The translations under genes were made by a program, and so were the position numbers. Under the pieces are notes generated by a model, which worked only from the letters and a program-made list of their open reading frames with translations, did not search any database and was not told the origin of the DNA. A stretch of 64,000 bases of DNA. Origin: Adineta vaga (taxonomy: Eukaryota > Animalia > Rotifera). Of this stretch, positions 243-16,164 are shown in pieces. Where the stretch lies: positions 5,518,001 through 5,582,000 of the forward strand of contig CP075495.1 in NCBI GenBank assembly GCA_021613535.1, written 5' to 3'. Each line of letters opens with the position of its first letter. Within the stretch, counting starts at the first letter, position 1.

Positions 243-1802
243 TTAGCGATGCGGTGAAACATTTCGTGAAGTTGAAGGTGATCGACCACTAAGACCACCA
301 GCAGATGAGTATGATGTTGAATAAGTGACTTCACGAACATTATGAGAACTACTTGGACCTGATGTATTTCTCAATAAACGTAAATTAAGTGAATCGAGTA
401 ATGAACGACCACGATTCATTATTTTTTCTGCTTCTTCAGCAAAATGTCGTAGACCAACTTGATTATTACCACCTTCGAGTAATAAACGATATCGACGTAT
501 TTCTTCTTCTAATGTTGTACGATATTTTTCTAAATCATTTATATAACCTTTTATACGATCAATTTCTTCACGATAACGTCTTTGTTCGTCAACAAGACGT
601 TGATCTTCATGATAGGTTGTGGATTGTATCTGTTGACGTATATCAGCTATTTGTCTATCAAGATCTTGATTTTCCATTTGTAAGCCATTAACACGACCAC
701 GTATATCAGATATACTTCGAGTGATTTCTCGAATCTTTTCTGTTTGCCATTGTGATTCAATCGGTTCTTTTGGTTGATGATATTCAATCAACGCACTAAC
801 TTTTGCCTGATAATAATTTTGTAATTGTTGTTGCTGTTGATCGGTAATTGCTTCAAATTGTTTACGTATTTCACGTATAGCAGCTGTTAATTCACTTTCA
901 AAGAATGGTGCTGGATCAACATTAGCAATAGCTACTTTGGAACGAAGTTGTTCAACATCAAATTTATGTGCAGTATCTAATGCTTTTAATTCTTGTTCAA
1001 GAACAGTTTTCTCTGCCATAAGTAATTGTTTTTGTGTTGCTTCATTAGCTATTTCAGAGATAAGATTTGCAACATCAGCACGAATACGTTGTAATTCAGC
1101 ATTGTATAGTGTAATTTCATCATCATTATCAGCAATTATTTTACGAATTAATTCAATTTTTTTTTCGAGATCAATGATTTTTTCACGTAATTGTTTTAAT
1201 TGACCTTTAGCACCATTGATTTGATCTGGTCGTTGAGCATTAGTTAAACGTTGTTCAGCTTGTTTAAGACGTGCTTCTGCTTCTTGTCGTTTACCTTGTC
1301 CTGAACGGACATCATCATCCATTCGTTTTAACGTTTCTTCGGCTTCTTTTTTTTCCCGTGTAATTATTTCACGAATACGTTGCAAACCAATACCTTTCTT
1401 ATTTCGTATATTATCCAAATCACGACTAAGTTTTCGATTGACTGCTTCTAAGTAACGAATTTTACCAATATATTCAGCAAATCGATCATTCAATTCAGCT
1501 AATTGACGTTTTTCTTCAGCTCGTTGACTATTAAATGGAACTAATGCCCAAGAACCCATGCCACCACCACCAACCGTAGTACGTAATGGTACAGCACTAC
1601 TTGACATCGAGTGAGATACACTCATCTTTGATGTTACACTTCGATTTCCTCCACCTAAATTTTTCACTGGTCGAGTGATGATCACTTGTCGTGGAGTAAT
1701 TGCTGACATATAGCCAACAGATCCAAGTGTGTCATATGTTGTATTTGTACGCGGATCTGCTGTATACATTTCTTCACGCTGTACATCATAGATAGTTGGC
1801 AT
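243..1802 (-). CDS. Cytoplasmic intermediate filament protein (protostome long-rod type, no lamin-tail domain), single exon
   Basis: 519-aa ORF. Coil 1A consensus EKRQLAELNDRFAEYIGKIRYLE and rod-end consensus LEEEIRRYRLLLEG are followed by a GLRH motif like the post-rod GLRQ of nematode IFA proteins. Rod is ~349 aa; the 75-aa Ser-rich tail has no CaaX. Confidence 0.92.
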   Translation of the reverse strand: MPTIYDVQREEMYTADPRTNTTYDTLGSVGYMSAITPRQVIITRPVKNLGGGNRSVTSKMSVSHSMSSSAVPLRTTVGGGGMGSWALVPFNSQRAEEKRQLAELNDRFAEYIGKIRYLEAVNRKLSRDLDNIRNKKGIGLQRIREIITREKKEAEETLKRMDDDVRSGQGKRQEAEARLKQAEQRLTNAQRPDQINGAKGQLKQLREKIIDLEKKIELIRKIIADNDDEITLYNAELQRIRADVANLISEIANEATQKQLLMAEKTVLEQELKALDTAHKFDVEQLRSKVAIANVDPAPFFESELTAAIREIRKQFEAITDQQQQQLQNYYQAKVSALIEYHQPKEPIESQWQTEKIREITRSISDIRGRVNGLQMENQDLDRQIADIRQQIQSTTYHEDQRLVDEQRRYREEIDRIKGYINDLEKYRTTLEEEIRRYRLLLEGGNNQVGLRHFAEEAEKIMNRGRSLLDSLNLRLLRNTSGPSSSHNVREVTYSTSYSSAGGLSGRSPSTSRNVSPHR

Positions 1803-1899
1803 GGTAAATGACGCAAAAAGAAACGAGCGGATTTCTTGATTTAAATAGATGGATATGTGTCAGATGAATGTGCTATAGAAAATGTGTACCGATGTACTT

Positions 1900-1907
1900 C
1901 TTATATA
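1900..1907 (-). promoter_or_regulatory. Candidate TATA box (TATATAAG) of the IF gene
   Basis: TATATAAG on the minus strand ~100 nt upstream of the ATG at 1802. The AT-rich background lowers specificity. Confidence 0.4.
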
Positions 1908-2142
1908 CGAGAAAGAACAAGAGATGATAGAAGGTATATGTGTGTATATGTAACAGACTCATCGACTTAATTTCTCATCAGTACAAACAAATCCAAAATT
2001 AATCGCATATTACATATTCTTGCGGTTTCTTTCACATGTACATTCATTTTCAAAAAGAAAGTGATATTCTATAGTGCTATTTAAAGCAATAATACAAACA
2101 CCAAAGCTCCCACTACTGCCCACGAATAACCTCATACAATAG

Positions 2143-5100
2143 TCAAGGCCCACAAATCAATAAAGCTTGAATAGAGTACACACTCACATACACGCGCGCA
2201 AAATCATATTTTATTATCCTACCTGATTCGGCTATTGACAACGGCCAAGACAACGAACTTGACTGTAATGACACCGTTTCAGAAGCTATAAAAAGAATAT
2301 TATGAACTTTGACATTTGTTCTTAGTTATAGTGAAAAAATTGCTGTATTCATTTTCAAATGACTCTTATACAACGATAATCAATGTGTTATTCGTAATAG
2401 AACAGAAAAAGATCAGTTTTCGATGATAAATTATGGTCCCAAAGAGTATCGCTGTGAGTATGCACTCATATTAGTGTATCATTCTTTTTCAAATAGTGAA
2501 AATAAAAACGAAATTCTATTTACCTCCTGCAATTCGAATGTCTGATGTTTTGACAATAGTTATTTGTATATTTTCACACGAATCTATCCATAATGAATTT
2601 AATGATGATTTGCATTGTTCATATGTTTGAATTGGTATACTATCATCAAGAGAAATAATTTCATCTCCAATTGATAAATTTGGACAATGATCGCCGTCAA
2701 TAATCGATGAAATTTTGATTTTTCCATCATCTGCTGCTTCAAAATCAAAACCATATCTTCCCAGATGATCTGCTTGTCTCGTAACAATAACTGTCGTATA
2801 ACTTTCTTCAATATCATTAGTTTTTGATTCTTTTTCATCACCATTATCAATGACACGTTCAATTGTTGTAATTAGCTCTTCACTAATTGTATCACTCACA
2901 GGCGATGCATTGTGTTCTCTTTGTTCATGTAGTTGCTTTTCAAGTTGATCGATATCATCATCGAATTGTTTAGTTGTCGTACGATATCGTTCAAAATTTG
3001 TTGAATAACGATGGCATAATTCTTCAAATTTGTCAACAATATCATCTGTTCCGGGTTCGGTTGTTGTTCGACGATAACCATATTCTTCGTAGATTTCTTC
3101 ATCATATACGGGTGGATGTAAAATATGAAATTCGATTTGATTTTCATTGGGAGGAAATTGATGATAATTTGAATTGCTTAAAAGGGAATCACTGACAATT
3201 TGAGAAAGATTGTTCACAGGTAGTGGTGGACGTGGTGGAACATATTCGTTTATGGGAATATTGGGTTGTGGCATGGATGATTCAATTTCATAAGCAATCG
3301 TTTCGGAAGTATGTGTGTTATCGACGTTTGATGAAGGAACAGATTCTTTTAGAATTTCGTATTCAATTGTGTCGTCATTCGATTCTTCCATAGAATAATC
3401 ATGGTAATGTTCATCAACTGGTGTATTTTCCATTTGGTTTTGATCTTCAATTTCTAACTCATCTTGCCGAAGAGCATCTAAAGGAAGTGTGTTCGAAATT
3501 GTTTCATCTGAAATCATTTGAGAATCGAATGATTCTGGAGTTTCCATTTCAATTAGTCTTTCGATTTGGACCGGTGAAGCTCTGTAAATCATAGGTTCCA
3601 TATCATTACTATCAATCATAAGTTCATTAGAAACAACGTCAGGAGTATATAAATCTATTGGTTCCATTTCGATTAGTGAAGCTTCATCAACAGTCTTTGG
3701 TATTTCTTCTGAAGGAGGAGTTTCAGGAATAGCTTGATCAACAATTTGGAATTTAATGGGTTGTTGAAATCTAGCGGCCAAAGCTTCATGAATGATTGTT
3801 CCAAGATTATCTGTATCGATGATTGATTCATTTTCACTGGATTCAGATAATTGTGATGAATAAATATCTGAATGAAATGAATCATTAGGTATCATTGTAA
3901 ATGATTTCTGATATGGACCTTCTAAAGCTTCATTAACAAGCGTTCCCAAATTATCTGTATTAGCAGTTAATTGATCGAATGATTCAGGTAATTCTTCAGT
4001 AAAAACTTCAAAATCAAATGGATTAGATGTTTTCATTTTGATTGGTTTTTGAAATCTAGCTGCTAAAGCTTCATGAATAATTGTTCCCAAATTATCTGTA
4101 TTTGCACTAGATTCTGAAGCGTCTTGATCAATATTACTAACAGATAATGCTTCATTAACTACTTGCACTAAATTATCAATATTAATGATCGATTCTTGTA
4201 CTTGATGAATTTCATTAAATTGAACTGATTTTTGATATCTAGCATTTAATGCTTCATGTACAATCGTACCTAAATTATCAGTATTCACTTGTTCATCAGA
4301 TTCACCGATTAAATTATCATAAGACCATTCATCGGAATCATTTACAACTTGTTTTGGTTCATCCTCAGTTGGCGTTATTGTATCATCATAAATAAATACT
4401 AAATTATTTACACAGGATGATGTTTGATCAATGGATTGAACAATTTCAACAAGATTATCAATAGATGGTTTCGTTGATTCTTCAGTAAGATTATCATAAA
4501 TGAATGCAAGATCATCCATTGTATTCGATATTTCTGTTTGATTACATCGATGAATATCCCCAACTATACTAACTAATTGATCAATATTAATGAGTGATTC
4601 TTCACCTTTAGCTAGTATATGTGCTTGTTCTTCATCAATGTTTGTTGTAATCTGATTATTTGTTCGATTGTATGTATCAATTTGTTCTAAGAGATCTGTT
4701 AGATTTTCAATAAGTACATCTGAATTTTCATTTGTTGATGAGATTTGTTGAGTTGTTTGTAAAGGTGATGGTATGGCATCATAATAGAAAGTTTCTTCGG
4801 GTGTAACAATATTGTTAATTAAATCATCGTGAACAAAATATTGTGGAAAATTACTACCATTCGTGTCATCACTTCCAATCGATAATGATGATTGATGACC
4901 ATTATCAATACGAGATTCTTTTGCTGTATGATAAGATGTCGTTGTACCATCATCTAAATCAATTAAACTATCAGCTTCGATAATTTGTGAATTTAGAGGT
5001 GGTGATGGAAATACATCCATATCGAATTTTGCTGTTATTGTTGGACTGTCAGTTGGAGTTATCTAATAATAGACACAAAAAAGAAAACATTCATTATCTA

Positions 5101-8100
5101 TTAAATGCATTTATATAAAGGATAATCGAAATATACAGTAAAACTTTTCTTCGTATACGACAATATGCAATCTCTTCGAATGAATTTCATTCGAAAATGA
5201 ACACATATGTTTAGATTAAATACTAGACGTTTTTTACTTCTGCTTCCCTGAACAATCTATGCTCTGTCGTTCGCACATTGATGATGAAAAGAACAATTGT
5301 ATCATACGTTTTTGTATTATGATAAATAAGAAAAGAAAATGAATTGATCAAGCATATTTAACTAAAGAAAAACATTGATACTGTTTTATACAATTTTGTT
5401 TGTGATTGGTTTTCATGTTCAAGATTAATATGTATATATCTACTGAATGAAAAACTCAATTAACAAAAGCTGAAGAAGAGTAATTTTGTTTTTTTTCGAT
5501 CTTGTTAATCAAACATACCACTTGGACGATTGAATAATGTAATAATTGTTAGAAATGATTACGTTTATTCTCTATGATATAATACTTTCAATTTCCGTAA
5601 GGGAGAAAGGTGATAATGAATTTAACCTTAGTCTCATAATTTTCTGTTAAATATACAACAACTCGATTATGATCGTTTAGTTAAGAATATTTAAAACTAA
5701 CATACATTTTTCATTGACATAAGTGAGTCTTCTAAATCATCATTATCAGCATGTTGCCATGAAGAATCTCGAATATGATGATCAATGGATGGTAAATCAT
5801 AACCATGATTCATATACGGTTCTAAATACATTCCACATGAACCTGGTGTTGACGGTGTTATTTCTAATGGTAATTCAATTGAATCTGGCGAAGGAGTTAT
5901 TGTATGAACTGTATGTAGTTGTCGCCGTATTGAGCGGCGACTATTTCGATTGGTAAAAGCATGATTTGATTGATTGGGTTGTTGTTGTTGTTGTTGCTGT
6001 TCGCTGGTTTCTAAAACTGTTGGTCGTGTATGACTATGTGTCGGTGAACCAGTCAGTTGTTTTAGATTTAACTGTGTATCCAGTAAAAATGTTGATGAAT
6101 CAATAATTGGACGAAAATTATTGGGAATAAATTCATTTTCTGTTGGTGATAGATAGATTTCATTATTATGTGCCCATTCATTAACTTTTGCACTTGCATT
6201 GATCATCACTTGATATAAATTATCAACAGGTGCAGTTGGTTTTGTTTGTGGCGAATTCATGCCTGATGATAAATATGCTGCCATTAATAATGCTTCATCA
6301 TTTTCTGATGATTTTTCTAGACGAAATTTCGGTAATGGACATTCATCACTAGTTTTACTTTTTGTTGGTGATGCTAATTTCCATTGTGGTTTTTCACTCC
6401 AAGAGTTAGTCATTGGTGCATGAATGGTATATTCATCTTCTTGTAGACGACGTGTCTTTCTATCTAATTCACCATAAAGTTCTCGTATTTGATCACGTGA
6501 ATACGTTTGCATTGATGAAGGAATAGCTGGTGTATTGGCAGCTTCATAAGCTATTTCACGACCACGAAGTATCATTGCTTCTTTTTCATCATTGTTCATA
6601 TCTTGTTTAACAGCTTGACGACGATAGATAAAACAAGCATCTGTAACCGTTTGACTTGGTTGTTGACGTTGAATTTGACGTTGTTTATTAGCTGTTTCGA
6701 TAGAATAACTAGAAACGAAAAGAAAAACATTTTTCAGAAAACGACACATATCAATTGCTTACATTAGACCAGATGATTTCGTTTTCTTCTCGTCAGAAGT
6801 TGTTTTTGAAATTGATTGTTGCAGTGAATCAAGTGATTTATGAGTATCCATTGATTCATCTTCACTTTTTTCCAAAGAAATTTTACTTCGATGTTTATAA
6901 TAATTTGAAAGAACACTTCGATCCGTAAGTAGTGATGTATTTGTACCTAGATATTCATTGAATTCTATCTCTTCACTTATTTTTCTTTAAGATTTAACTT
7001 ACCATCTGTTTCAATAAAACCACTATCTCGAGCTGGACTTGTACTACGTTTATAAACTAATGGTTTACTTTGATGTTCATGTGTAAGTTTGCTTTTATTT
7101 GTAATATTTTGTTTGGAATTCGAATTCGATGGGATATCATCAAGAATAATCAATGATCTATGACTTTCATTAAATGATGATGTTGATCGTCGATCATCAA
7201 TAGATAATTTTCGAAATTCATTAAACGTTAAAGAACCCAAATGTCGAACTGTAGTATTATTCAACAAAGATCGATCTGTACAACGGCATATACCAATACG
7301 TATCGTCTTATTCTGACGACGTAAAGCTGTAAATTCTGTTTTAATTTGATCATAAGTCAAAGTTATTGGTGGTTTAAGAAGATTTTTTTCATTGACAAAT
7401 ATTAAAATATCTCCTAAAAATAACAATTCATAGATGAAATGTTTGATCTATCCTTGAACTTAATAATTGTGTAATCGATACAAACATATGAAAATGTCAA
7501 ACACTAGATAAATACTCGTCTCTATTTTTATATGATCATTATTTTGATAGATATTGTCAATGTTAGAAGTTGAAAAGTTTAACTAAGAACAACAGTAATA
7601 ACAAAGTGTCAATGACCTATCGAACGATGAATAAAAAAAGAAAAGTTCATTCGTTCGTCTATGAAAGAATTTCATGTTTATTTACATCAGAAGAAACTAT
7701 GCGCAACAGTCTCAACGTTCTTTGATATACGCAAATTTGATTGAGTTAATATATGATGCATCTGCTTCCATATATTAATTCTTATTCAATTATTAATGCA
7801 AATGCGATGATCAATATATGCATTTGTTAGAATGATAATAAGAAAAGAAAAAAAGATCTTTTCATCAATAACAATACTAAATAATTTTCTATTTGACCTT
7901 AATTTCAAGGCGCATTGTTCGCGTAAGAAATATAGTGAAGAAGAAGAAGAAGAGGAAAGTGCTTTTTCTATCGAATTATTAACGATAATCAGACAAGAAT
8001 GAACAAAATAATCATAAATAAATCGAACTGTTCTTATAGACAACAAGAATATCACGCATCGATCACAGGTGTATCGACGAGTTGAACATATTTTCCATAG

Positions 8101-11100
8101 GTATACAATTCAAATAATTGAATATGATTAAATCCTTTAAATAATAATTCTTTGGGTATATATAAAGTACGTTGTGGTCCAATACTCCAATATCGTCCTA
8201 AATTGAATCCATTAATAAAAGCTACACCTTTTGTCCATTGAGAATCTAATGATAAATATGTGTCAGCAATTGATTGTTCATTCTCAATATGAAATGGTGC
8301 ATAAAATAATTGTGGACCATGATTGAGATCATGAATTTTCTCAGCATTTTTTTCTTCAATATTCATATGATTCCAATCTGTAATACTTGACATGCCTTTA
8401 CGAAATTCTAATGTATGAATAGTCCATGTTTTCAATTCAATTGTATCATTTAATAATACTTTATCAAGAATACCTTTTCGACTTTGATCAAGTGTTGGAC
8501 CAAAATTAATTCGACCCATATTCTCCACTATAATTGTGAAATTTTTCGTATTTGATGGTAAATCAAATCGAATGAAATTTTCTGTACATAAAGATTTATA
8601 AATTATTTTTCCATTGGCAAGAATTAATGCATTATCAGCAATGGATTTTATTGTTATATGATATTCAGTATTCTTTTCTTTGAGATAATATTCCATATTA
8701 TTATTTGTATAAACAATAAAACCTTGAGATGCACTGGTACCAGTTTGAGGATTGATTTTAATCTGTTCCATATTTAATGGTCCATCATGAATTTCACATT
8801 TATTTGTTAAAATATCATCATCAAGTAATTGTTCAAATGTTTTATAACCAAAGATTTTTATTTTACCAAAAGAAGCTTTTTTCGATGGTTTAGTTTCAAT
8901 AATTTCAAATGTATCATCATTTGAACGTCGATGATTATAGACAATTAATTTTGGATTGAGTTCATAGAACTTTTTAATTATACGTTGTATAGCAAAATAT
9001 TTTTCTGTTCGATCACCAGATTCATTTAATGGCGCATCATAATCATAAGAAGTAACTAATGGTGAATATTTTTGTGACGGAAAATGATGACCACCTGATG
9101 TAAAACCAAAATTTGTACCACCAAAAAACATATAAAAATTAATGGATATTTCATATTTTGAATTTAATAAAATTTCTTCGAGGTCTTTTTCAAATTTTTG
9201 TGCAGGATAAGCAGCTTTAGAGCCTGTTTTATGTTTACCACCCCAGTAATCGAACCATCCAGTCCAATATTCTGTAATCATTATATGATGATGAGAACGA
9301 AATACCATTAATTGTTCGATATTTTCTTGAATATTTCGTTGAAAATTAATTGTTGCCCAAACATCTTTTAATGCACCACGAGAAAGATCTCTAGCACCAT
9401 CTGATGTGAAAAATAATTCATCTAAACCATATTCAACATACATGGAATGAATAGCTCGAAGATAATCTTTATCTTCACCATAGCTTCCATATTCATTTTC
9501 AATTTGAAATGCAATTATTGAACCTTGACCATGTCGATTATATTGATGTTCAGATAGAATTGGTAATAATACTGAATAGTATTTTTTTAATGCATCAAGA
9601 AAACCGGGATGAGTTGAACGAACACGCATTTTGTTATCTTGTAATAACCAACTTGGTAAACCACCCCATTCATATTCAGCACAGATATAACCTAGAAAAA
9701 TAAATAGAGAGTTGAATAGAATGAGCGAAAAGATTTATCTATTATTGATTTTACCTGATGGGCGAATAATTGCAAACATTTCATGTTGATGAATAAGTTT
9801 CAAAAAACTTGATAGATCTGTTAAACCTTCTGTAAATTTATAATTGTTTCTATCTGGTTCATGTAAATTCCATGGAATGTAGGTTTCAATAGTATTTAAA
9901 CCAGCTCTCTTCATTTCTTCGATTCGATCTGACCATAATTGTGGTAGAACACGAAAATAATGCAGTGAACCACTTAAAATTCGAAATGGTCGAAGATGTT
10001 TACGATTTAAATCATTTTCTTTGAATAAACGAATAAATAAATGTCGTTCATTATCAAGTATTAATGTTGGTTCGTATTGTTCAGGTAACATTTGTTTCAA
10101 TAATAAATAAAATAATATAATAAAACCAAAAACTATGAAAATGTGTAAATATCTTCGATGATAACGTAAATGATAAATACGCATAACAAATAGTTTTATT
10201 GCTAAGGTAACTGTTTGTTTTCTTCTATGTTTGTCGTCGAAATGTTCTTTGTCATACATCAAATAAATTCTTTGTTGATAGGTAAATCATTGAAAGTAGA
10301 ACATGTGATACGATATTATGATAGTAATGGTATAGAAATCGTTGAATATATCTACATTTAGTTTTGTAATGAATACTCATGAAAAACGTGCAATAAAATG
10401 TAAGCAAAGCTTATGTACGCATTTCGTCTATAGAACGACGATGACATGCGCACATTTAGATATAGACATACGTATACAAAGAAATAATGCTATTACTACT
10501 ACAGCGATGTTCGCTGAGTTGGTTGTCGGTTAAGCGTATATTTTTTTTTATTATTGGAGCCGCATGTGATGTCGTTCACGAGCAAAATGTCAAAAGGAAG
10601 AAAGAAAAGAAAAGAAAGGAAGGAAGAACAGCGAAGAAATAGAACGAGAAAAGAACGAAGCAGCAACCAGTCATTTCTGAATACCCTCGTCGGTAATATA
10701 CTATTATATTGAATCATATTATGTTATCTGCTTCAGTAACAAACATTTAGTTGACAAAAGATAAAAACGAATAGATGAAACATTCATGTATTGTTCTAAT
10801 CAATTTCTGTTTTTTTTTGTCATTACTTTTCGTAGAAACAAGAAAAACGAAGAGCTTACCGTTACGAATTCCAATTCCGTGTAAACCATTAGAAATCTCA
10901 TAAAATATAATTAAACGTTTATCATTGGCATCATTTGTCAAACTAAGATTTCGTTTATGACTTATATCAAAGACATAAAATTCCAATAAATGATTTTGTT
11001 CATCTGTTGTTGGGCGTGATGATGAATCCGTATCATTATTATTATTATTGTTGTTGTTGTTGTTGTTGTTGTTGTTATTATTATTATTATTAGTATTTCG

Positions 11101-12293
11101 TTGTTTCTTTCTTGACTGTACATTACTACTTACACAACTTAAACTGTCACATGATAATGAACCTAAATGAACGAAGAATACATAAAGTAATTCAATGCTA
11201 AAAAAACAGATACCTAAAAATTTTTTAGGGGAAAAACCTTGTGGTGACTGCCGCTGCTGCTGCTGCTGTTTGCTCATCTGTTTCGTTAATAACGAAACAA
11301 GTGCAATTTTTTCATGTAAATGATGATAACTATGAGATTGTTGTTCACTTTGCTTCATTCCGATCATCTTTTCAATTACTGTCTATTCAATCAAATGCTA
11401 TTGCCTTTTGTAGCCAAGTTAAAGTTTAAAATAATGACATGATACTAAGCTTCTCATTTTTCTTCTTTATGTACAATAGTGATCTTTACGAATCAGATGA
11501 GAAAAAATAATTATGACGATCGGACGGGTAAGGTAAACGACGACGAAAACGAAGAGGAGAAGAAGAAAAAGATGATGATGATGATGATCAACCGATTTAA
11601 TCGGAGCGGATCAATTCTTTCTATCTATCTTTCGTCTGTAAATGAAGGCTAGTGTTGTTTTTATTATTGTTGTTGGCGACTAACGACTATACAAATAGAT
11701 GTCTCGACATAAAGAAGTGCACAATCAGCTTCCGGCTCGGTGTAAATAATGAAGATCTAATCAGTTTGATGCATATGTTTTATTTTATCTATGTATATCA
11801 AAAACAAAACATCATATAAATGCATCTATCAATTAAGAGATCAGAAAATATGATAGAAAAATTCATTATCAAAACAAGTTTCTTATTCATTCAAATCAAT
11901 TCAAATAGATCAAACTGATCTCGAGTTTTTAATAAAACAAATTCATCTATTGACAAACCGACGAAAACATTCATAATAAATCTATTTTCTTTTCTTCCTA
12001 AATGCTCTGCATGAGCATATGTGCAATACTCCAATTACATTTTTCATTTCGATTACATCATTGTCTTACATTCCAATGGTATTAATTAATTTCATATGTC
12101 GAAAGAGAGAAGACAAAGAAGAAGAAGAAAAACATATCTGCTTACTTTTATCGTCGTTACTGTTCTGAATTTGTTTTTGATGATAAAGTTGTTGAGCAAC
12201 ACGTTTTCTTGATAATGGCCGTTTTTCTTTCGGATAAAGTTTGGATGAACGTAAACTTCCACAACAACTCTGACATGAGAGACAATCAACCAT
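2143..12293 (-). CDS. Large multi-exon protein with N-terminal and C-terminal PDZ domains and a long acidic repeat-rich linker
   Basis: Phase-compatible exons: 12293-12146 (tentative), ~11378-11214, 11162-10860, 7413-7003, 6946-6763, 6708-5706, 5062-2524, 2285-2223, 2165-2143 (tentative). The 10860/7413 junction rebuilds the PDZ motif GIGIRN-G-DILIFVNE. The C-terminal PDZ reads GRYGFDF...LSIGDEIISLD. Confidence 0.75.
3770..4290 (-). repeat. Dispersed protein-level repeats (N/D)TDNLGT(I/L)(I/V)(H/N)EAL
   Basis: Four near-identical copies near 4280, 4095, 3955 and 3810, plus degenerate copies, in the 834-aa ORF. Confidence 0.85.
8052..10259 (-). CDS. GH35 beta-galactosidase (GLB1-like) with N-terminal signal anchor; 2 exons; nested in the PDZ-gene intron
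   Basis: Motifs ILSGSLHYFRV, GLNTIETYIPWNLHEP, acid/base FQIENEYG, nucleophile TEYWTGWFD, NFYMFFGGTNFG, TSYDYDAPL, NLGRYW and GPQRTLY. One GT-AG intron at 9692-9754 joins RPSG/YICAE. Hydrophobic segment LHIFIVFGFIILFYLLL. The start could be a later Met. Confidence 0.93.
11032..11092 (-). repeat. Compound (AAT)/(AAC) microsatellite encoding a ~19-Asn run
   Basis: Read directly; lies within exon 11162-10860 of the PDZ gene. Confidence 0.9.
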
Positions 12294-13320
12294 GGATACA
12301 AATATATATAGTTAGATACAGGAGATGTAGAAAAAAAACGAAGTCAATCAATCTGGAGCAAGTGTAAAAAGAACATTATAATGATTTACTAAATGATAGT
12401 CGCTCTCTCTCCCTTTCTTCTCTCGCGCTTCTAACTTATTGTATGTTCAAATTTTATCTTCATAGTTATGTGTATATGTCTGTCTGGTCAAATGAAAAAC
12501 CAAAACTCACGAAAAGAACATGCGATAATATTAATAATTTTTCGCTCGTTTTAATCAAGACTAGACATATACAATGGGGAGAAAAGTTATCGAATGACTA
12601 CGATCAATGTTGTTTTTTTCAAGCGTAGACGGAGATGTCGCATCGAGTTAAATTGTTTGAATGTTGCCCGTGAACATTTTTGCATAATCAGACATGCATA
12701 TACATTTGAACATTGTCTTCTTATAGTAATAGTTCTTTACATGATGATTTTATCGTTATTCGATGCTGTTCAATCTTACAATCTGTTGATGTGAATGAAC
12801 ATTTTTCTTCGATATTTACTTAGAGTAAAGAAGAATAATAATAAGGAGGAAAAAAATGAAATAAGGGCGGGTGTCTTTTCATTGTCCAATTCGCATTTAT
12901 CAACAGAAGATTACACACATACAGAACGTGTTGAATCAGTAAAAATCTTCCGTTTACTCCCCGCTTATGTCTTCTTTTGATACATTCGATCTTACCTGAA
13001 TATAAAAGAAATTTCATTCGAGAAGTACACCGTCAGTAATCACAGAAACTACATTCATATGATAATAAAATTCTAAAACTTCAATTGCAACACTTATGCT
13101 AATATTAAATGGAAGGAGAAGGAGAGAGAGGCGGAAGAAAAAACATCTAACAAAAAATGTATACATTTACCCCATCACTCAATGATCTTTATAATAGTTA
13201 TCCTACCATTTCTCCTCTTAGTATTTATTACACTTCACACCAGAGTTAAAAACGTCGTTTGTCTTTTCTCTTCTCTTTATTCACTCGCTTGTATTTTTTC
13301 TCTCCCTCTTCCTTTCGCTG

Positions 13321-13343
13321 TCTCTCTCTCTCTCTCTCTCTCT
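13321..13343. repeat. (CT)n microsatellite
   Basis: tctctctc run in the intergenic region. Confidence 0.85.
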
Positions 13344-16164
13344 ACCTCTTTCTACTTATATCGATCGCTGCTCTGATGTCTGTAAAACTATAGAAGAGAA
13401 GAGTTAAGAGAGAAAAATCATGCACACACATGCAGTATACACATATTCACACAAAAGGATGAGCTTTGTACAATTGACCATCTGTCTCGCATACGCATTT
13501 TTGTTCTATTGCTAGAAAAGAGAGCATGATAATTTACAGTTCATCCTATGCATCAATGATAACGAAATATATGCATCTTGAGAAGAAAAAAATGAAGAAG
13601 AAGAAGATGAAATCAGGCACGTGCGCAAGCTAGACAAATGAAAAGTTTTACCATGAAAAGAAATTAGAACGCTAACGTTATGTTTGTCACCCTACACATT
13701 TATTGATACCATATTACCTACATAGATATGCATTCGACTAAATTAGAACAAATGAAATGAACGTTTGTTGTTTTAACTACCATCGATCTTCATTTGTTAC
13801 GGTTACACGTCGGAACATTGATCAATTACAAATGCTTTATGATATAGTCATTCAATTCATTTGTTCCGTTCAATGGAATCATATAGATGCAAATGACATT
13901 GTAAGGATACTCAATCACAACATCAATGATAATAACAAGAGAGAAAAAAAAGTCTAAATGACAAGTATTGATCATTACTTGTCTAATGAATTTGATCTTC
14001 TGATGCAAATATATGATGACCGATATCGAACAAAATGGCTTCTGTTGCTTTTTTCCCCTTCGTCTTGTTCTTTCTCTTCAAAAGTAATCAAATCTTGCGG
14101 TATTCTCTTGACACAAAACTGTCCATTATAGAATAACGAAAAGATGGTATAATGAGTTGTGTCATCGGGGCGTTGTTTAACAGCAGTGTCAGCAGCAGCA
14201 GCTGGTTTATCGCAAAGAATAGGATAAAAAAAGAAAGGAAAACGAATGTAAAATCCTTGACATTACGTCTCAAATAGGTTCTTTCAGGACGTAGAATTCT
14301 GTCATACTCAAGGATAGAAGTATTAGTTTATTTTATACAACATCAAAATCTGATGGATTAAAATGCAATCTATCTTTGTTCTACTCAAGATATTAAATTG
14401 AAAAAAAAAACTACTTGTAAATATCAAATGTAAGATTATTCGAATACTTACAACAACCTAAGCCGAGTGAACGTAGCCGAAATGATGGGATTAATTTCAT
14501 TGTTATTTAATCGATATGAATAAGTAAATAATCAAAGAGGAAAACTATTGTAATGTTTTCCTCAATAATATGCGAAATACGGAAGACAACAGCCTTCTCA
14601 AACTTGTTATAAAGATAATGTGAAAAAAAGAATGTTGAAATTCTTTTTTGCTTGATTTCGTTTTGATACAAATATCTTCTATTAAAAGCAACAATAACGA
14701 CGACGATGGCGACGATCACAACTGTTATTAACGTATTGAGCCAAGGTTCTCCATCATGATACTAGAATAAAAATCATGATGAAACAAAGATTTGTCCAAT
14801 GGCAACAGTTGTCTAGTGATTATTATTCAAATCACCATTGATGTGCAAATAGACTTTCTTTTCTTCGTATACATTCTACTCAAAGAAATCCTATCGAAGT
14901 AACTTACTTAAGTGATAACTATATATATACACACATCATAATGAAGATTACCGTTTGTTTGATGTAATGCCGTAACGAAAGAAAACATATTCAATAGTTA
15001 AAAATTGTTGCTTATATTTTGATTCGAAAGTATGTGTATGCATTTTGCACTTCTCATTGTCTCAAGAGAACACATAAAGACGGAAATTAGTTGACAGGTG
15101 AACGTTGCCGAAGTAGTTTTGTTTAGTATAATCAATAATGTAACTATTCATTTGTAATCAGCCTATTCTCATACACATTTCATTTCTTCTTCTTTTTTCA
15201 TCTTCTCAACATGCACAACATAATAGACAAATAATGAGCCAGATTCGCTATTCACTAAGAAATGATTGATGATTATCAATTAAGTAGAATTTCATGACTA
15301 GGGAATAGAAATAATGAGAAAAAAAGTTAATTAGATACAGATGATTAGTCTTTTTCTTCCTAGTTTTAGATTAATATTTAATAAATTCGAGTATTTATTA
15401 TAAAACATAAAGTATATTCAACTGTTCTTAATCTGCATTTGATTTAAACATATGTTACAAATGACATAGTTTCGATTGATTTTTAATGTCTATTGTCCTG
15501 AGAAAATTTTTCATCAATCAGGTGTTAGAGCTTTTCTGAATCTTATTAAGATTATATTCAATTGTCGATCAAACGGCATGATCTATTAGTTGAGTAAGAA
15601 GATCTTTTCTTTCCAACTTGATCTATAACAATTTTAACAGAAGTATAAAGATAGACTATATACGTATGTGATTATCAATGTTTATAAAAATAAAGAAAGA
15701 TAAACTGCCAGAGATTCTTCGAGGAAAAATCAAGTTATTTATAGTATTCATTGTTATTCCAAAAGAAAAAAATTTAGATGATTGATAGGTTCAAATTCGT
15801 TGTGCTGAAAAGTATAATTATTTTTCTTTCTTATTGATAAAAACAAATTTTTCTCAGAGACAAGAATATAGAATATGATTGATGATGAACATGTGATTTA
15901 CTACTGTGTATTTTCGTAGGAAAAGAAGAACGAATAAAACTTGTTCATGACATATATTTCAAATACGAGTAATCATTATTATTTGCATTAGTTAAAGATT
16001 GAATTATGATTAAAGAAGAAAAAAAAAGGATAAAGATTAACAACTACAAATAGGAGTAGACATTCATACAATGAAGACGAAGAAAGAAAGAAAAAAAAGA
16101 TTCATCACCGGACAAATACACACATATATAAAGTCTATACTTGAATATGTAAATATGTATATAT

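Follow-up and report, generated by a model that had tools for sequence, protein, structure and literature searches.

Do three neighbouring annotated genes of the bdelloid rotifer Adineta vaga represent three genes, or one gene that carries another inside an intron? The question is raised by 64,000 nt of chromosome 2 (assembly GCA_021613535.1, contig CP075495.1, positions 5,518,001 to 5,582,000 of the forward strand), a stretch which at its full length is called the window here and whose numbering is used unless stated otherwise. The public annotation of this chromosome 2 copy holds a 5' 'orphan' gene, a GH35 beta-galactosidase gene and a gene for a downstream protein of 1,435 residues. We consider it very probable that the first and the third of these are parts of one host gene of at least 12.4 kb, extending from 14500 to 2143 on the minus strand, and that the GH35 gene is nested in an intron of this host gene. 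All window features given below lie on the minus strand and were read on it.

The host intron and the split domain

The upstream host exon ends with a donor after base 10860 (...GGA ATT CGT AAC G/gtaagc, the slash marking the splice site), and the downstream host exon follows an acceptor before base 7413 (ttatttttag/GA GAT ATT TTA). Both sites are in phase 1. Across 10860/7413, G plus GA gives a Gly codon, and the product reads ...GIGIRN-G-DILIFVNE.... The intron in between (7414-10859) comprises 3,446 nt and contains the GH35 gene (10259-8052) completely and on the same strand. A first-pass annotation of the window had proposed this same-strand nesting in a domain-splitting intron between phase-compatible exons; when the strand was read again, all its coordinates were found to be right, and the restored Gly codon bears out the compatibility of the phases. 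The same annotation put the intron at 60 times the local norm. This holds against the two adjoining introns of about 56 nt, but not against other introns of the host gene: two further introns in the annotated host model measure about 238 and 643 nt, and according to the exon reading the 5' introns of the host measure about 1 to 3.3 kb.

The homologous intron was examined in seven loci, namely both A. vaga ohnologs, A. ricciae (L020 and L021), A. steineri (L019), Rotaria socialis (L016) and R. magnacalcarata (L018). The donor ..RN G/GT[AG]AGT, the acceptor YAG/G[AT] GA[TC] and the split GGN codon are present in 7/7 loci; the intron is 2,394-4,320 nt long and holds the GH35 gene in six of them. 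The second A. vaga copy was found by searching every window exon against the whole assembly (100.8 Mb, 6 contigs). Each piece has one second copy, with 52-56% protein identity to the window copy, and these copies follow each other in the same order on one strand of the ohnologous contig C5: the upstream-half exon at 12167269-12167418, GH35 exon 1 at 12167807-12168217, GH35 exon 2 at 12168494-12170038 and the downstream-half exon at 12170268-12170609. Here, too, the donor (...CGA AAT G/gtaagt) and the acceptor (...tttttcag/GT GAT ATT) are in phase 1 and rebuild Gly. In 8 further bdelloid proteins the upstream exon is conserved precisely as far as ...G[IV]RNG, beyond which the read-through tails differ. 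None of the 144 codons of the downstream exon is an in-frame ATG, although conservation sets in with the very first of them (25 database proteins).

Both halves stand in one reading frame in contig L024 (JGI sample 3300002345, 6,295 nt), which comes from a related bdelloid. All genomic introns are absent from it, and its single open reading frame (ORF) of 1,388 codons reads ...IGVQNG-DILVFLN... across the junction. L024 is colinear with the window at 14503-14441, 11160-10816, 7414-7001, 6962-5718, 5062-2537 and 2313-2227. By these features it behaves like a spliced mRNA, and even as a genomic copy without introns it would place the two halves in one reading frame. Public gene models join the halves as well, both in the C5 copy (UJR22808.1, I4U23_025838, with the C5 GH35 gene as the next locus tag, 025839) and in several isoform models of R. 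magnacalcarata. A. vaga itself would accordingly be expected to splice 10860 to 7413.

The two exons which flank the intron encode the halves of one small domain. The exon 10860-11162, in which conservation stops at the donor, would contribute beta1-beta3 and alpha1 and ends with ...GIGIRN G-, and the exon 7003-7413, which has no in-frame ATG, would contribute beta4, beta5, alpha2 and beta6. The joined halves had been claimed to rebuild a canonical PDZ domain. The proposed HMMER comparison of joined with separate halves gave no Pfam PDZ match either way: on segments of the ohnolog and ortholog that are joined by nature (P0038:60-170 and P0036:80-190), PF00595 and PF17820 found nothing at E<=1, and they did not match the separate window halves. 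Alignment A1 combines the joined segments from C5 and R. magnacalcarata with separate halves from other loci. A profile of this alignment matched no PDB sequence, and by eye no GLGF-type carboxylate-binding loop is visible in it between beta1 and beta2. The naturally joined C5 ohnolog segment was then modelled with AlphaFold2, giving a predicted local distance difference test score of 77.7, the element order b1 b2 b3 a1 b4 b5 a2 b6 and an exon junction in the loop just before b4. In a Foldseek search of this model against the PDB, 50/50 of the matches listed were PDZ domains (RGS3, Par-3, Dishevelled, Scribble and others), with probabilities of 0.98-1.00, E of about 1e-3 to 8e-3 and target-normalised template modelling scores up to 0.71. 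The domain is therefore predicted to be a PDZ-like fold, but a divergent rather than a canonical one, without a visible GLGF loop.

The nested GH35 gene

The coding part of GH35 exon 1 (9755-10259) has its own ATG and encodes an N-terminal membrane anchor and the start of the TIM barrel. It is followed by a phase-1 intron of 63 nt (9692-9754) and by the coding part of exon 2 (8052-9691), which contains the catalytic motifs ENEYG and TEYWTGW and two beta domains and ends with a TGA stop. We take the glutamates of the two motifs (acid/base and nucleophile) to be those known as E188 and E268 in human GLB1. The Pfam matches to GH35 (PF01301; 2.9e-28 and 1e-49; 170.3 and 99.8 bits against a cut-off of 27) and to both GLB1-type beta domains (PF21317, PF21467) lie above their cut-offs. 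Read from ATG to TGA, the guest is what the first-pass annotation had called it, a complete gene with an intron of its own, and more precisely an intact gene for a beta-galactosidase of the GLB1/BgaC type. It shares the GH35 domain and the two beta domains with GLB1, GLB1L2 and the bacterial BgaC, but differs from them in the N-terminal anchor. An N-terminal anchor is found in the other full-length orthologs, and the position of the ATG is the same in A. vaga and R. socialis.

Orthologs across bdelloids are 48-81% identical. The best matches outside bdelloids are BgaC-type enzymes of Bacillales and animal GLB1L2 (35-39% identity), and relatives in the PDB include 4MAD, 7KDV and 3THC. In the GH35 tree, the nested bdelloid clade, the Bacillales enzymes and animal GLB1L2 form a three-way split without a resolved order. 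Elsewhere on chromosome 2 (C2:12445620-12448182) there is a broken third GH35 copy, with TGA and TAA stops inside the matches.

The guest had been regarded as a retroposed or relocated insertion, owing to its single intron. Neither retroposition nor a recent insertion is supported. In each of the six guest-bearing loci the intron occupies the same point, which argues against a processed retrocopy; this was recognised from breaks between high-scoring segment pairs, with the split seen in L015, L016, L019, L020 and L021, and was read directly in three loci, phase 1 being confirmed in both A. vaga copies. Long, intron-poor exons are also found in the host itself. Moreover, the nest is found on both ohnologous chromosomes and in two genera. 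Two ohnolog lineages (A and B below) can be told apart by their N-termini, MVDCLSCQSCCGS and M[VI]DCLSWHS, and both occur in Adineta and in Rotaria, which suggests that the nest arose before the bdelloid genome was duplicated and before the two genera separated. A short and empty intron in relatives had also been considered. The intron is long in 7/7 loci and contains GH35 in 6/7, but R. magnacalcarata L018 is indeed without the gene: a GH35 remnant was looked for in its 2,394-nt intron and none was found, and the models of this locus join the halves. The dated nest thus includes one natural loss of the guest that kept the long intron in place.

The guest's own transcripts were seen in a related species. 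The Logan contigs L022 (SRR22100215) and L023 (SRR22100216) contain the GH35 coding sequence with the GH35 intron removed and are thus RNA-derived; the library types of these two contigs and of L024 were judged from the absence of introns only. The 5' ends of L022 and L023 lie 20 nt apart and map to a non-coding block (an A-run and then CGCTTAACCG...) that is conserved about 270 nt 5' of the GH35 ATG in 4 lineage-A genomes. As this block is intronic with respect to the host, a separate 5' end is shown for the guest in a relative. By homology the block corresponds to window 10500-10560 in A. vaga, and the A. vaga GH35 transcript may start near 10,540-10,560, about 300 nt downstream of the host donor.

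The 3' ends are more varied. L023 ends 58 nt past the GH35 stop, whereas L022 continues from the GH35 3' end for 142 nt on through the host acceptor into host exons from which the host introns are removed; it represents either an RNA with read-through or overlapping RNAs that were joined in the assembly. In the window, the AATAAA at 7677-7682, which had been named as a candidate poly(A) signal of the guest, is the sole canonical signal on the way from the GH35 stop to the host acceptor, a distance of 638 nt. Its position is not conserved, and A. steineri has no AATAAA there at all. From the GH35 stop to the host acceptor there are 600-1,547 nt in lineage A and 218-242 nt in lineage B, where the single AATAAA of this interval lies 19-28 nt before the acceptor. 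In some lineages the host 3' splice site is 19-140 nt away from the 3'-end signals of the guest.

The nest is a well-conserved, old example of a known gene arrangement. As in the same-orientation nests of Drosophila, C. elegans and mammals, a whole gene sits in one intron and the host has to read through the guest's signals. The bdelloid nest differs from these in that the intron interrupts one codon of a small domain and the pair is kept on both ohnologs and across genera; it also lies in a compact genome, with neighbouring introns of about 56 nt and with the guest ending 142-640 nt from the host acceptor in most loci. The statement that nested genes are mostly antiparallel needs to be toned down: in mammals a bias towards opposite orientation exists but is slight, same- and opposite-orientation pairs being 'broadly similar' in number (PMC11694760). 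At the mouse H13/Mcts2 locus, transcription of the nested gene drives premature intronic polyadenylation of the host (PMC13309782), and this pair is a tested model of an active nested promoter that cuts host transcripts short. Mcts2, however, is a retrogene under imprinting and DNA methylation, whereas the bdelloid guest has an intron. A switch of this kind, with mutually exclusive expression or a change of poly(A) site, is what the first-pass annotation had suggested as a possibility for the nest; what the RNA contigs show is confined to the guest's separate 5' end and to some RNA that passes from the guest into the downstream host exons. Among the listed publications that combine bdelloids with nested genes, judged by their titles, we found none on this arrangement.

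The probable one-gene reading and its alternatives

With one host gene, the halves ending at 10860 and starting at 7413 would be spliced over the phase-1 intron of 3,446 nt, rebuilding the Gly of the ...G-D-I-L-I-F-V-N... strand. Polymerase from the host promoters would have to read through the guest, the spliceosome would have to pair the distant host sites, and transcripts from the guest promoter would stop short of the host acceptor or else extend into the downstream host exons. For A. vaga itself we infer where the GH35 transcript starts and ends, and likewise any competition between host and guest. Complementary boxes flanking the guest that could bridge the host splice sites were sought; only AT-rich pairs at chance level were found, none of them common to the loci. 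An Rfam scan of the region gave only two sub-threshold snoRNA-like matches.

Several observations weigh against this reading. The join of 10860 to 7413 is inferred from the contig of a related bdelloid and from public models, not from A. vaga RNA. L024 also holds the next gene, for an intermediate filament, 34 nt past the host stop; it would represent an RNA with read-through or, with lower probability, a genomic copy that has no introns. In the sample of L022, the path from intron to exon at the host acceptor is not out-competed by the path from exon to exon. Neither Pfam PDZ nor the PDB sequence profile recognises the joined segment. Finally, the public models P0077, P0094 and P0097 fuse upstream host exons to GH35.

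Taken at face value, the fusion models would make the upstream host exons part of the galactosidase gene, as its 5' exons, and give a fusion protein. P0077, P0094 and P0097 connect ...G[IV]RN to GH35, and the frame is kept by phase-1 introns. Phase 1 is in fact found at every phaseable intron in the 5' half of the host (7003-14452) and at the guest intron, that is, at the donors of three alternative 5' exons, the large intron, the GH35 intron and the donor after 7003, so that any combination of exons, host-guest chimeras included, stays in frame. The acceptors used by the fusions, however, lie at different, unconserved points inside GH35 exon 1, and the GH35 RNA contigs start in intronic sequence and not in host exons. 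The shared position of the GH35 ATG and the N-terminal anchor of the orthologs also speak for a protein that starts on its own. We take the fusions for prediction artefacts, probably helped by the uniform intron phase, and consider such a protein scarcely conceivable. Three separate genes, as annotated, would comprise an orphan that reads through after ...GIRNG, a lone GH35 gene and a downstream gene starting from an ATG near 7487. The window's largest exon is 100% identical to the A. vaga model I4U23_007520 (P0001), which starts MFVSITQLL-R-DILIF, and the annotations of R. socialis, a Rotaria sp. and A. steineri likewise show three genes. But the downstream starts differ in every species (MFVSITQLLR, MKLIENKR, MILR, MSNCYSLIESSYLIR and a read-through MNLLFLG), the Rotaria and A. 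steineri models each using a different ad hoc start, and the read-through tails of the 'orphans' are unconserved. The A. vaga start stems from a mini first exon of 27 nt (7461-7487, MFVSITQLL). It was rejected and judged an annotation artefact, since the corresponding place in A. ricciae and A. steineri has neither the ATG nor the GTTCAA donor. Each product would, moreover, hold half a PDZ fold, and L024 and the C5 model join what this reading separates; we regard it as very improbable.

An arrangement resembling an operon has more to be said for it. The downstream host exons could be expressed mainly from the GH35 promoter on a bicistronic RNA, perhaps trans-spliced at 7413, the long-range join being a minor event. 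Bdelloids have spliced-leader trans-splicing. L022 is a spliced GH35 mRNA that passes through the host acceptor into spliced host exons, L024 likewise holds two neighbouring genes on one contig, and in lineage B the sole AATAAA lies close to the host acceptor. In the spliced-leader operons of nematodes and tunicates, too, the gap between the upstream 3' end and the 3' splice site is short, and here RNA contigs span both genes. Unlike in those operons, the downstream bdelloid unit lacks its own start codon and carries on a domain whose first part is encoded upstream: the first ATG of the downstream exon is out of frame, the first internal Met of the annotated protein is at about residue 180, and conservation of the exon nevertheless sets in at its first codon. 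The product would include half a PDZ domain, and the joins in the contigs may be assembly products of overlapping RNAs. This reading has in our view a slim chance of being right.

Elements of both arrangements could also be combined. The same-strand nests of bdelloids might be hybrid operons, in which transcripts from the guest promoter run into the downstream host exons and the output of the two genes is coupled; though a little less doubtful than the plain operon, this idea is still unlikely. Its further part, that guest polyadenylation, long-range cis-splicing and perhaps spliced-leader trans-splicing compete at the host 3' splice site, has an equally small prospect. If it were true, L022 and L024 would offer a first indication that polycistronic RNA exists in this trans-splicing phylum.

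With a single host gene containing GH35 as the favoured reading, the public annotation needs to be corrected. On chromosome 2 the host is split into an 'orphan' and a protein of 1,435 residues with an invented start. Other bdelloid genomes are split likewise, and some annotations fuse host exons to the enzyme.

Further parts of the host gene

The host product is a scaffold-type protein with the N-terminal divergent PDZ-like domain, a long repeat region and a second, weak PDZ domain at the C-terminus. A full-library search with the downstream exon, aimed at relatives outside bdelloids, returned 25 matches that are apparently all bdelloid; as far as this one search goes, the host family looks confined to bdelloids.

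Upstream of the domain the gene has alternative phase-1 first exons, one of them Cys-rich. The exon 14452-14500 (MKLIPSFRLRSLGLGC, donor T-gtaagt) was revealed by mapping L024; its ATG and donor were read in the window, it is 81% identical to residues 12-32 of the L024 ORF, and its N-terminus recurs in P0077 and P0051. The Cys-rich exon 12146-12293 (MVDCLSCQSCCGS..., donor A-gtaagc) was read in the sequence, and nearly identical N-termini occur in R. socialis and in A. steineri (P0057/P0058). Its Cys-rich MVDCLSC start resembles the palmitoylated N-terminus of PSD-95. The boundaries placed at 11214 and 11378 enclose a probable cassette or alternative-start exon with an internal ATG at 11367 and phase 1 at both ends. 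It is present in P0058, skipped in P0057 and P0038, and the R. magnacalcarata isoform P0050 starts inside it. The host seems to have three alternative 5' exons with phase-1 ends, beginning MKLIPSFRLRSLG..., MVDCLSCQSCCGS... and, from the internal ATG, MIGMKQSEQ.... Just 5' of the internal-ATG exon, host intron 1 has a non-coding stretch of about 250 nt (11400-11720; L015 3740-3960) that is strongly conserved between the A. vaga ohnologs and partly kept in R. socialis. It may be an internal promoter or a 5' untranslated region.

The remaining host gene (2143-7002), delimited by mapping P0001 and colinear with L024, encodes the repeat-rich middle, the weak C-terminal PDZ domain and a hydrophobic tail. 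Weak PDZ matches were also obtained at the C-terminus of P0038. The 643-nt intron in this part (5063-5705), ten times as long as its neighbours, contains no ORF of note. In L024 the host ORF stops right after ...SLSWPLSIVE, and the ORF of the intermediate filament starts 34 nt later (L024 4177-4215). In the window (1802-2225), a good donor (TCA G/gtagga) is situated at about 2223 within the annotated last exon, 420 nt before the filament ATG. Host and filament gene may be linked by splicing or read-through. The annotated C-terminus of the host (...YVSVYSIQALLICGP, 2143-2222), which L024 lacks, is hydrophobic and common to the bdelloid protein P0020 (...VLLICGP); it looks like a tail anchor.

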